Part shown: positions 7,711-12,200 of the stretch, in pieces | Position numbering within the stretch: position 1 is the stretch's first letter | How the letters are laid out: each line of letters opens with the position of its first letter | DNA from: Rebecca billardiae RCC1528 | Lineage: Eukaryota > Protista > Haptophyta | DNA: 64,000 nucleotides | Direction of reading: 5' to 3' | Assembly (NCBI GenBank): GCA_965240325.2 | Contig: OZ251232.1 | Coordinates: 1,488,001-1,552,000, forward strand | Translations under genes and position numbers: made by a program | Notes under the pieces: generated by a model | Told to the model about the DNA's origin: nothing | The model's database searches: none | The model's input: the letters and a program-made list of their open reading frames with translations, nothing else

Positions 7711-8409
7711 CTACGCATCGTCCTCCCCTGCGTCTGCGCCCACGTCACAGAGCTGCCCCATCTCGCACTGCAGGTCGTCCATCGCCTCATTGATCTCGTC
7801 GACCAGCCCGTCGAGCCCAGAGCGCAGCAGCGCAGTCTGCTCACGCGCCCGCGCGAGTGCCTCGCCTGCCCCCGAGTCGAACTCGGCACGCAGCTCGGCG
7901 ACGCGCGCCTCGCGGCGGACAAGCTGAAGCTCGACGGTCACCGAGAGCTTGCGCTGCTCGAGACCCTGCAACGCGCGCACGAGTGTCGCCAGGGCTGCGC
8001 CATCTGCACCTTGTGAGCTGAGTGCCGCCTCGGCAGCGTTGATGCCCGCGGATGCGTGCGCAAACTCGGCGGTGAGCTGCGCGCAAAGCATCTCGTACGC
8101 CGCGCCGTCCAGGCGCTCGAGAAAGGCGACAAATCCGCGCTCGAACGCGCCGTAGCTCTCGACGCGCTCGGTCTGCAGCTGCTGCACGAGCCGGACTAGC
8201 TCAACGGGGCCCATGCCGCTCATGTCATGCGCGACGACGACGGCCGTGCCCGCCTCAGGCGCCGCCGAAGCGGCGGGCGGGCACACGTCGAGGTCGGCGG
8301 GGTTGAGCGCGGGACCACGCGCATGGCAAGGGCACGCACCGCTGCCGTCGCACGGGCGTGAGGCTAGCAAGCGCAGCGCGTCCGCCACGTCAATGCCGGG
8401 GGACGCCAT
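7711..8409 (-). CDS. REX1-B (required for excision 1-B) domain protein, 232 aa
   Basis: The intronless ORF from MASPGID carries the REX1-B pattern LQTERVESYGAFERGF...YEMLCAQLTAEF...S..I...LVRALQGLEQRKL.+TVELQ...LVDEINEAMDDLQCEM. Confidence 0.8.
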   Translation of the reverse strand: MASPGIDVADALRLLASRPCDGSGACPCHARGPALNPADLDVCPPAASAAPEAGTAVVVAHDMSGMGPVELVRLVQQLQTERVESYGAFERGFVAFLERLDGAAYEMLCAQLTAEFAHASAGINAAEAALSSQGADGAALATLVRALQGLEQRKLSVTVELQLVRREARVAELRAEFDSGAGEALARAREQTALLRSGLDGLVDEINEAMDDLQCEMGQLCDVGADAGEDDA

Positions 8410-8687
8410 CCTGCTGAATCTTCCGCGGCCTTCGTGGAGTTTCCGACGCAAATCGTTCAATAATCGCAATCGCCGACTCGCCGTTCCATGGACAATGAAT
8501 CAATCGTTCACGCGATGGCGGACGACCATGCACGATGCAGCGATTTGTGAGCGGTCCTCACTAGCCGGCCCCGGTTCTGAAACGGACCGTGGCTTCTCGG
8601 GCGTGGCGATTGGCTCCTGACTACAGTGCAGGAAGTCATCCGCTAACGGCGCATGCTCTCTGCGCCTAGGCAGAGCAGCCAGAGCTG

Positions 8688-9080
8688 CTAGCACGGAAAA
8701 TGCTCTGCGAACCACGAGCCGATGCTCAGTGGCATCTTGATGAGTGTGATGGCAAGGTTGGCGAGCGCGCCGATGCACCCGACCGCCGGACAGCAGAGGG
8801 AGAGGATCGTTGCTGCACACCACCGCGCCACGCATGGGTTGGGCGCGTGCAGGCTGAGCCTCAGAGGCAGACGTTGCGGGCGCTCGCACGCGCAGACTGC
8901 CGCGCCGAGCGCATTGCGCACCTGGGATCCAGATCAGGATCCCCACCAGCGTGAGGAACAGCCCAAAGAAGCCGAAGACGAGGCCTGCGCGCGCGCGATA
9001 AGGGGCGTCAGCATGCGCCGGCGTTGCCGCAGCATCGGCGGGCGCGCCGGCTCACCCAGGAGCGTGCCGATTGGACGCAT
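8688..9080 (-). CDS. TAXIMIN-like small Cys-rich hydrophobic peptide, 70 aa, 3 exons (9080-9056, 8984-8922, 8812-8688)
   Basis: Canonical GTGAG..CAG and GTGCG..CAG introns join in frame to give MRPIGTLLGLVFGFFGLFLTLVGILIWIPATILSLCCPAVGCIGALANLAITLIKMPLSIGSWFAEHFPC. This matches the plant TAXIMIN pattern RP+G.L+GL.F...+VG.++WI...+LS..CP.......LAN.A+.LIK.P+....WF....PC*. Confidence 0.8.
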
Positions 9081-9248
9081 GATGGTGAGCAGTGCTCACG
9101 GTCGGACCGTCGGAGCTGCCACTGCTCAGAAAGCTCAGGCTCTCGACTTGGGTGGAGCGGCTGCGCGGGTCCGGGAGTCGTGAGCCCCAGCCCCCAGTCA
9201 CCTCCCGGGCACGAACGCATCCGCCGAGGCCGAGGTGGAGGGCACGTC

Positions 9249-12200
9249 ATGGCGTCGCCCGACGCGGGCCGCAGCGCTGAGGCGGTGGCGACGCCCGTCG
9301 TCGCGGCGGTGCGCGACTCGCTCTCCCCGTCGTGCGCGCAGCCGCTCTTCGACCTTTCCTCGCCCGGCGTGCAGTGGATCATGCCAACGTACTTTGGCGT
9401 GTGCGCGCGGCACGAATGTCCGAGGCACATACCGCCGACGTGCTCGTGCGCGGCGGCGGGCGGCGCGTCGCACGCCGTGCTCCACCCGCGCTGCGAGAAG
9501 CACGTCGCGCACATGGCGCGCGAGCAATGGCCCGACGTGGACGCCGTGTGCGAGGCGCTCTACGCGCTGCCCGTCGGCAAAGGCTACACGGTGCGTAGCG
9601 CGCGCAGCTGCCGCGCGGACGCACGCGGCGTCGTGCCCGGGCTGATGGGCGTCTGTGCCTCGCGTGGGGCGCGCTCGCGTACGCGTGCGCCGCGCCGCGC
9701 AGGTGTGCGCTGAGTGCCACCGCAAGGCCCACGTGATGGCCGAGGCTGCTGACTGGACGCGCGTCGTCTGGGCAGCGACGCTCGCAGGCTGCACGCAGGC
9801 GCACGCGGCGGACAGCAGCCCGTCGGACTGGTCGCCGCTCGACGCGCTGGTGGAGGCGACCTCGCGCGTCGTCCAGTCCGCCCTCTCCGAGGCCACCATG
9901 TCCGACGCCGTCACCTCCATCGTGATGACCATCTGGTCGGGCGCGTCGCGCTCGCTTGTTCTCAATCAGACCGAGCGCGCGCGCGCGTGGGCGCAGCTCG
10001 AGGCGCGGCTTCGGGACCTCGGGTCCGGCGACGCGGGGACGGCGCCCGCGGCGATGCGCGAGGCGCTCGCACGGGCCGTGCGCCGGCGCACCGTCACGTC
10101 GCTGCGCGCGTGGGAGGACGACGTGACTCGGGCTGGCGAGGTGGCGCCGCGCGCCGCGGGAGGGCGCGATGGCGGCAGCGCCGCGCGCGCCGCTCGCGCG
10201 GCCGCCGCCAACTCGCCGCTGCCGGCGGCATTGCCAGCCTCGACGTCGGGCGCCGAGCCGCCGCCCAGCACGCCTGATACGGGCCGCCTTACCGAGCTGC
10301 AGGCGCGTCTCGACGCGGAGGTCGCGCGCGCCGAAGCGGCCGAGGCGGCCGCGGCCGAGGCGGCCGCGGAGCTCGAGTGCGCGAGAGCGGATGCGGAGGC
10401 GGCGCGCAGCTCCGCCGAGGCGGACGCGGCGGTGGCGGCGGTGTCCGAGCTCGCCACCGCGCGAACCGCGTGGGAGGCCGCTGAGCGCGAGCTGCGCGCG
10501 CAGCTCGAGGACGCGCGCGCCGAGGCTGAGGCTGCCAAGGCCGCAGCGGCGGCGGCGGAGGCCACGGCGGCGGAGGCGGCGGCGGAGGCGGCTGCGGAGG
10601 CGGCGGCAGCGGCGGCAGCGGCGGGCGGCACAGACGGCGTGGGCGACCAGGCTGAGGCAGAGGCGGAGATGGCGGCCGCGAGCGCGCGTGAGCTCGCGCT
10701 CGCAGACGCGCTCGCAGACGCCGACGCTCGCCTGGCCGCTGCCTCCGCCGCCGCCGCCGAGGCGGACGCGCGCGCGGAGACTCGAGCGGATGAGGCGGCG
10801 GCCGCGGCCGCGGACGTTCAGCGCGAGCGGGCGCAGGCGACGTCGGAGCGCGAGGCGGCCGCGCACGCGCTCGACGGCGCGCGCGCGGAGCTCGCGGAGG
10901 CGGAGGCGGCCGCGCGCGCGGAGATCGCCTCCCTGCGCGAGCAGCTCCGAGCCGCGCGCGCCGACCTCGCCGCCGCGCCCGCCGCCGCGTCGTCGCCACT
11001 GGCCGCGCCCACGCGCCAACTGCCGCCGGTGGCCGGCGCCCCGGCGGCGGCAGGCGCAACCGCAGCCGAGGGCGGCGCGGCTGTGGCAGGTACGGCGGGC
11101 AGCCCGGGCGCGGCGGCGTCCGACGCCGCGGAGGCGGCCGCGGCGCAGCAGCAGCGGTTATGCCGTCAGCTCGAGCGCGCGCGCCGCGCCCTCGGCTCGT
11201 CAGTCCGCCGCGAGGGCGCGGCATTGCACTCGCTTCGACAGGTGTGTAAGGCAGTGATCGCGCGCCGCGCGCCGCGCGTGCGCCGCGCGGTGGTGTTACA
11301 CCGCAGCCGCGCCACGCGGCTCACGCGCGCGGCCATGCGCCCTGCCAAACCCGTGCGCGCAGGCGCACGCGCGCCAACTGCTTGGCCTGCGAGCGCAGCA
11401 CGTTGCAGACACGCGGCGCGCCGACGACGAGGTGCGGTGCCCCCGCGCGAAGCAGCGCGCCCGTGCGCTTCCGAGCGCGGGTTGGTTGGCTGCGGCCGCG
11501 CGCGCCGCGGTGCTCTGCGCGCCGCCCGTGGCTGAGCGCTCGCATCCATCGCCCTCGTGCCCGCCGCTCCGCCGTGGCGCGCAGGCTGCCGCCGCTTGCG
11601 CGGCCGACTATGATCGAGGCCTCGCGGAAGGCACCGCCCGCGCGCGTGCGGAGGTGTCGCGACTCCGCTCGCTGCTCGGCGCGGCGGTCGCTGAGCAGGG
11701 CGCCATGTCGAAGCGGCTGCACGCGCTCTCGACGAGCCCACGCGGTGAGCGCGGCGGCGCGGCGGCGGCCGACGTCGACGGCGGCTCCCACGGAACCACT
11801 GCGACCGCCCCGGCTGCATCGGTGCCGGCCGCGGCGCCACCGATGGCCAACGGAGACGCCCGGCTCGAAGCGTCGGGCGGTCTGCCGCTGCTGGACGGGG
11901 ACCTGCTTGGGCTGGGCGGCATCGAGCTGGGCGGGGCTACGGGCGGCGCACGCGCGCCGCTGCCGGCACCGCCGGGCGGAGGCGCGGCGCTCGAGATCTC
12001 CGGACTCGCAGACGGTCCCCTCTCGGACGCGCAGCCGCGCGAGGCGAGACGAGCGTCTCCGCCATCGCAGGAGGCGGCCGATTCGGACACTGCTGGCGCG
12101 GCAAATGCACCGCCCGCTGCCGACATGCCGAGTGCAGCTGCAGGGGCGTTGCTGCCAGCAGCCTTGCCCGCACCGGTAACACCGTTGTCGCCATCATCTC

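Follow-up and report, generated by a model that had tools for sequence, protein, structure and literature searches.

The window, which is the whole stretch of 64,000 nucleotides analysed here, contains a small gene of three exons on its minus strand, whose spliced product would be a 70-residue hydrophobic peptide resembling the TAXIMIN family. The contig that carries it is at least 1.55 Mb long and the locus occurs as a single copy in the 72-Mb genome. A REX1-B domain gene follows on the same strand, and a long ORF starts upstream in the opposite direction. The features of the locus are the following.

9655-11535, plus strand: ORF of 626 aa, rich in Ala, Glu and Arg, in DNA of up to 84% GC (peak at 10350-11100), with weak matches to coiled-coil-type Pfam families (Golgin_A5, E 0.013).
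9056-9080, minus strand: exon 1, with the ATG at 9080, eight codons (MRPIGTLL), then the G that opens a split GGC codon (Gly).
8985-9055, minus strand: intron 1, 71 nt, GTGAGC...GCGCAG, GT-AG, phase 1, GC 0.77.
8922-8984, minus strand: exon 2, 63 nt, 20 full codons, encoding a hydrophobic helix with the end LIWIP.
8813-8921, minus strand: intron 2, 109 nt, GTGCGC...GTGCAG, GT-AG, phase 1, in the codon three positions after the conserved Trp (Trp+3).
8688-8812, minus strand: exon 3, 125 nt, with the two last bases of a split Ala codon, 40 codons and the stop TAG at 8690-8688; its layout is a Cys/Pro turn, a second helix and a K-x-P...W-F...F-P-C tail.
7711-8469, minus strand: REX1-B domain gene (PF14966, E 4e-20, residues 90-184 of a 252-aa ORF).

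The REX1-B gene is the next gene downstream, about 280 nt after the TAG of the TAXIMIN-like gene, and its start is probably an ATG near 8410. On the other side, the region between the TAXIMIN-like gene and the divergent 626-aa ORF (9081-9654) may serve both as a bidirectional promoter.

The sequence-only reading had proposed that three small exons are joined through canonical introns into a peptide of 70 aa. Direct reading and translation showed its coordinates and junctions to be correct, with 9055/8985 and 8921/8813 being the first and last bases of the two introns. Piecewise translation of the minus strand gave a spliced coding length of 213 nt, corresponding to 70 codons and the TAG, and the split codons read Gly at the junction of exons 1 and 2 and Ala at that of exons 2 and 3. 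Neither 71 nor 109 nt is a multiple of three, so the frame is kept only when both introns are removed. An in-frame TGA (9098-9096) lies five codons upstream of the ATG. The GC contents of the exons at the first, second and third codon positions were found to be 0.54, 0.46 and 0.83, which is the pattern expected of coding DNA in a genome of 68% GC, and the introns have no such periodicity. We infer the splicing of the three exons from the sequence.

The spliced product is absent from the ORF track, as the same reading had pointed out; the list holds a 77-aa ORF, made of exon 3 and part of intron 2, and a 48-aa ORF that includes exon 1. Microproteins spread over exons of 25-125 nt slip past ORF-based annotation. 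The peptide was also rightly described as hydrophobic: of the 68 residues encoded by whole codons in the three exons, 3 are charged, and the mean hydropathy is 2.4 in exon 2 and 1.3 in exon 3. The motifs LIKMP, WF, SLCCP..GC and the terminal PC were all found in the translated exons.

Plant TAXIMIN genes were collected with a DNA pattern, K-x-P-x5-W-F-x3-[IF]-P-C-stop, which was written from the C-terminus of the window gene and guided by the plant C-termini encoded in the cloning primers used by Colling et al. (PMC4526920 supplement). The pattern matches the window once. In the metagenome collection it matched 120 loci (L008-L127), and 89 of these are last exons of plant TAXIMIN genes from host DNA in plant-associated samples; some of the matched contigs contain a contiguous full-length reading frame. 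A cysteine filter was passed by 37 distinct tails of 38 aa, of which 36 were kept after L024, without a TAXIMIN motif, was set aside. Two of the full-length proteins from these contigs lie on chromosome-scale NCBI assemblies, where PF28483 is recorded for them. Loci L011, L019, L029, L035, L037, L064, L084 and L122 are copies of one repeat from the same plant-associated metagenome series; they have a stop inside the match and are unrelated to TAXIMIN. Criteria for membership in the family were taken from the Pfam model PF28483, Onrubia 2014 and Colling 2015.

The comparison with plant TAXIMINs that had been suggested as a check was run exon by exon, and significant profile similarity was found. 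Exon 3 aligned to 26 plant last exons over 38 ungapped columns (hhalign 97.3%, E 1.9e-11), with 12-19 of the 38 residues identical to those of the plants. Exon 2 aligned to columns 11-28 of a profile of 24 plant first exons (profile A5; hhalign 95.3%, E 2.3e-8), which is the expected register. When the plant tail profile was searched against all six frames of the 72-Mb genome, the sole match was the window at 8691-8804 on the minus strand (E 1e-8, 42 bits). In a fixed-register PSSM test, exon 2 and both the non-pattern and the pattern part of exon 3 ranked first among the ~90,000-110,000 six-frame k-mers of the window, and not one of 100,000 shuffles matched exon 2 or either part of exon 3. 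The eight codons of exon 1 were compared with plant columns 1-8, where 69 of 100,000 shuffles and 3 window k-mers, itself included, reached its score.

These comparisons contain some circularity, since the pattern by which the plant genes were retrieved makes agreement at nine residues of the tail obligatory. When a HMMER model was built from the 22 non-pattern columns of the tail, the window was not among its matches, and most of the HMMER score therefore comes from the C-terminal signature, on which the retrieval of the plant genes was also based. Searched genome-wide, the plant N-terminal profile missed exon 2, with its 20 residues, and gave one spurious match of 14 bits. In an exhaustive phmmer search of 1.84 billion proteins, exon 3 by itself matched no plant protein at E <= 0.001, and a feature search with it gave no usable match. 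A Pfam scan of the exons and of the 77-aa ORF, with a library older than the TAXIMIN model PF28483, returned no match, and back-translated algal motifs yielded no confirmed relative in the metagenome collection.

The exhaustive phmmer search of 1.84 billion representative proteins with exon 3 alone did identify a protein of 102 aa, denoted P0002, with E 3.6e-4 and 49% identity, and the alignment is flush at both C-termini. P0002 is a contiguous, intronless ORF on a Logan contig of 4.2 kb (SRR13370223_15135, locus L002). A precomputed PF28483:TAXIMIN match is recorded on it, and in its language-model features P0002:33-102 resembles plant TAXIMIN clusters at a score of 0.91, sharing 206-208 features with them. 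Over all exons, the window and P0002 are identical at 35 of 70 residues (50%) without a gap. Exon 1 corresponds to residues 33-40 of P0002, the split Gly to G41, exon 2 to residues 42-61, the second split codon to residue 62 and exon 3 to residues 63-102, so that both split codons are in register and the Gly one is identical. Exon 2 is 58% identical to residues 42-60 (BLASTP, E 2e-5), an identity equalled by 0 of 20,000 shuffles in fixed register. For exon 1, 4 of 8 residues are identical and 45 of 20,000 shuffles, again in fixed register, were as good. Because exons 1 and 2 were not used in finding P0002, their match to it is independent support for the splice model.

The second phmmer match, a 772-aa repeat protein (P0001), was spurious, as the match is a low-complexity stretch of 20 residues. 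Word-index protein searches with exon 3, with P0002 and with the alignment of both found nothing beyond P0002. After the plant clusters, the next feature match of P0002:33-102 in the ESM Atlas was a hypothetical cluster of 82 aa, mostly from arthropods, at 0.82; this score falls short of the reliable range, and the cluster is a weak pointer to relatives in animals.

The contig of P0002 (L002:1-4182) has 72% GC and is extremely compact; its 4.2 kb contain five intronless genes, which are separated by 21-130 nt. The TAXIMIN homologue has a GT29 sialyltransferase-like gene, a SET/Rubisco-LSMT-like gene and a DUF3119 gene among its neighbours. In the genome of the window, GT29-like stretches occur at 15 or more scattered places. 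The neighbours of P0002 are only 30-50% identical to genes of that genome. The contig comes from a photosynthetic microeukaryote, a GC-rich microalga.

A short, hydrophobic protein such as this one might also come from a chance open frame in GC-rich DNA, with a coincidental likeness to TAXIMIN, and exon 3 drew blanks in the word index, in the feature search and in the Pfam library that predates PF28483. We consider this explanation very improbable. Three separately encoded pieces match both P0002 and the plant profiles at a register set beforehand, at scores reached by 0-69 of 100,000 shuffles in the case of the plant profiles. Moreover, the plant profile matches one place genome-wide, the GC content is periodic by codon position, and the plant references carry PF28483, that is, they are TAXIMIN genes. 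On the profile evidence, we regard homology of the window gene to TAXIMIN as established, and the resemblance first noticed in the sequence was borne out against real plant genes by the hhalign results for exons 2 and 3, the single genome match and the permutation tests.

We then compared the predicted protein with the described features of the family. In plants, TAXIMIN genes have two exons and one intron, and the proteins have six conserved cysteines and a constant hydrophobic C-terminal part of 46 aa (PMC4526920). At 70 aa, the window product is close in size to these proteins (~73-75 aa), and it has an N-terminal hydrophobic segment and a hydrophobic C-terminal part. The stretch that runs from the Trp to the C-terminus has the same length as in plants, 44 residues, the Trp being the third residue of the plant 46-aa part. 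Exon 3 retains the three conserved prolines (in C-C-P, K-M-P and F-P-C), which are aligned to invariant or nearly invariant plant columns. From R-P to P-C, the alignment of the plants, P0002 and the window is ungapped; counted from the residue before R-P (Cys or Met), the length to the terminal P-C is 70 residues in the window as in plants. The window gene departs from the description in having two introns, and in having four cysteines, three around the turn and one at the C-terminus. The only cysteines common to the plants, P0002 and the window are the one at Trp+15 and the terminal one, while the Pro at Trp+11 is invariant. The missing six-cysteine motif would mark the window gene as a divergent member of the family, without undoing the profile evidence.

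To our knowledge from a literature search, TAXIMIN has been reported in land plants only, down to Physcomitrella and Selaginella, and the search found no publication joining TAXIMIN with an alga. In the genome of the window, a gene for the red-type Rubisco activase, cbbX, scores above the curated cut-off and lies on contig 41, which appears to be the plastid (G000:C41:42383-43231, minus strand); a second cbbX lies on nuclear contig 7 (G000:C7:3283278-3284042, minus strand). The presence of cbbX in both plastid and nucleus is the red-lineage arrangement, and therefore the genome is not that of a green plant. The plastid and nuclear copies thus support the earlier claim of a non-plant alga as host, outside the Viridiplantae. 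The profile tests and the non-green host together also uphold the proposed extension of the family beyond land plants, with the addition that the Pfam model already flags one microalgal homologue, P0002.

A phylogeny had been proposed to separate vertical inheritance from horizontal transfer. In a tree of 38 columns, the window and P0002 were paired (99/96) on a long branch outside all 36 land-plant tails, although an alignment of this length is too short for firm topology. The position outside the plant tails argues against contamination or a recent transfer from land plants. On that question, the tree places the window gene outside the sampled land plants, and 38 columns are too few to say more.

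A TAXIMIN homologue could have been gained from a green-lineage donor, by endosymbiotic or horizontal transfer, instead of descending from an ancient eukaryotic gene. Such a transfer would fit with the described and clustered members being overwhelmingly from Streptophyta, with the finding of one other non-plant relative only among 1.84 billion representatives, and with intron 2 interrupting the very codon that carries the one plant intron. It fits less well with the pair formed by the window and P0002 (99/96), which lies outside the 36 sampled land-plant sequences rather than among them, and with the composition, extra intron and changed intron phase, which look native. We regard a green donor as rather unlikely, though far from negligible. 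The TAXIMIN family is older or more mobile than thought.

To characterize the predicted protein, we used P0002:33-102 as a proxy for structure modelling. The AlphaFold2 model, from a two-row alignment, consists of two helices (residues 4-36 and 38-67) with a break at the invariant Pro (mean pLDDT 76). A shape search with this hairpin gave antiparallel helical hairpins as best matches, but these were generic (e.g. chemoreceptor signalling domains) and uninformative. In Arabidopsis, TAX1-Venus is found at the cell membrane, and only when the N-terminal hydrophobic segment is present; the 46-aa C-terminal part of TAXIMIN has up to 29 hydrophobic residues (PMC4526920). We favour a hairpin in the membrane because of the modelled hairpin, the few charges and the membrane location of TAX1-Venus, and the window product is most likely a two-helix hairpin membrane microprotein, judging from the model of its relative.

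In the mechanism that we propose, a short N-terminal stretch, containing one Arg, would be followed by a long hydrophobic helix, a tight turn with the invariant Pro flanked by cysteines, a second hydrophobic helix, and an amphipathic C-terminal tail ending in K-x-P-x5-W-F-x3-F-P-C. The first helix would take the protein into the ER membrane, by analogy with the N-terminal segment of Arabidopsis TAX1. The protein would then remain, as a hairpin of two helices, in a membrane of the secretory pathway or in the plasma membrane, with a cell-autonomous role such as the modulation of a membrane partner, and it would not be released as a soluble disulfide-knotted hormone. The common cysteines, after the turn and at the C-terminus, are at opposite ends of the modelled hairpin, and for this reason lipidation or intermolecular bonds seem more likely for them than an internal disulfide.

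The model put forward for plants is a different one, in which the first helix serves as a signal peptide that is removed, while the C-terminal part of ~46 residues, with its cysteines, is secreted as an extracellular signal, either autocrine or from cell to cell, that would act through a receptor. The plant family has been described as secreted peptides (PMC4526920), the plant-like distance of 44 residues from the Trp to the C-terminus would allow an equivalent 46-aa product in the alga, and the three conserved prolines are present. However, cleavage and secretion of plant TAXIMIN are in-silico predictions (PMC4526920), and TAX1-Venus stays at the membrane. The presence of four cysteines rather than six, with two positions common to the alga, P0002 and plants, speaks against a conserved disulfide fold. 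In addition, an Ile precedes the equivalent cleavage point, which we infer to be unfavourable by the -3/-1 rule, and the 'mature' part is almost wholly hydrophobic. Secretion of this part is in our view unlikely, though still a serious alternative. It is quite probable that the locus is a genuine single-copy nuclear gene of three exons for a 70-residue TAXIMIN (PF28483) in a red-plastid alga, and that its product is a membrane hairpin acting cell-autonomously.

TAXIMINs are listed among the plant cysteine-rich peptide hormones, and we know of no receptor, processing or structure for them. A homologue in a unicellular, non-green alga moves the origin or the spread of TAXIMIN beyond land plants. 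It also reveals which residues are truly universal in the family, namely R-P-x-G, V-G..I-W-I, the Pro of the turn, one Cys after the turn and K-x-P...[WF]-F...P-C; the six-cysteine motif is not among them. The algal homologue favours a membrane-resident, cell-autonomous function, which is testable in a single-celled system. We tentatively suggest that TAXIMIN may be an older eukaryotic hairpin membrane microprotein, acting cell-autonomously and present in red-plastid unicellular algae, rather than something that land plants invented for signalling between cells, and that the six-cysteine 'secreted hormone' label may describe a later elaboration or misread what is a membrane protein; we hold this as a possibility with somewhat less than even confidence.

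The PMP3/RCI2 proteins are small two-helix membrane microproteins, located in the plasma membrane in plants. The predicted window protein is like them in being a protein of the ~55-75 aa range with two hydrophobic helices and a short turn. It has no sequence relationship to them: no family of this kind turned up when the exons and P0002 were scanned with Pfam, and no homology is claimed.

With land-plant TAXIMIN (Taxus TbTAX, Arabidopsis TAX1/TAX2), the window protein has in common R-P-[LI]-G, G-L-x-F, V-G-x-x-I-W-I, the Pro at Trp+11 and the tail K-x-P-x5-W-F-x3-[IF]-P-C-stop. The plant cluster C-x-C-P-C-C-x-C reads L-C-C-P-A-V-G-C in the window, and the plant Cys before R-P is replaced by the start Met. 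The alteration of the plant CxCPCC motif to SLCCP..GC is as the sequence-only reading had claimed, and accompanies the reduction to four cysteines. The genes differ in their introns as well. Of the plant genomic loci that contain both exons, 22 of 22 are interrupted by one intron, at codon Trp+3 in phase 2. Intron 2 of the window interrupts this codon too, although in phase 1, whereas intron 1, after codon 8, is without counterpart in the land-plant genes or in P0002. An intron in the Trp+3 codon is thus seen from mosses to seed plants (e.g. L010, L028, L120) and in the alga, one base apart. It could be an old intron that slid or an independent gain at a similar site.

P0002, the closest relative that the searches found, is like the window protein in its reduced cysteine content, in its P-x-V-G-C-I turn and in its grouping on the tree. 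It differs in being encoded without introns, in an acidic N-terminal extension of 32 residues and in having F-F for W-F in the tail. In contrast to the land-plant TAXIMINs, the window gene has as its host a unicellular alga with a red-type plastid. Taken with these likenesses and differences, the window gene would be a new, divergent member of the TAXIMIN family outside land plants, and not a new kind of system.
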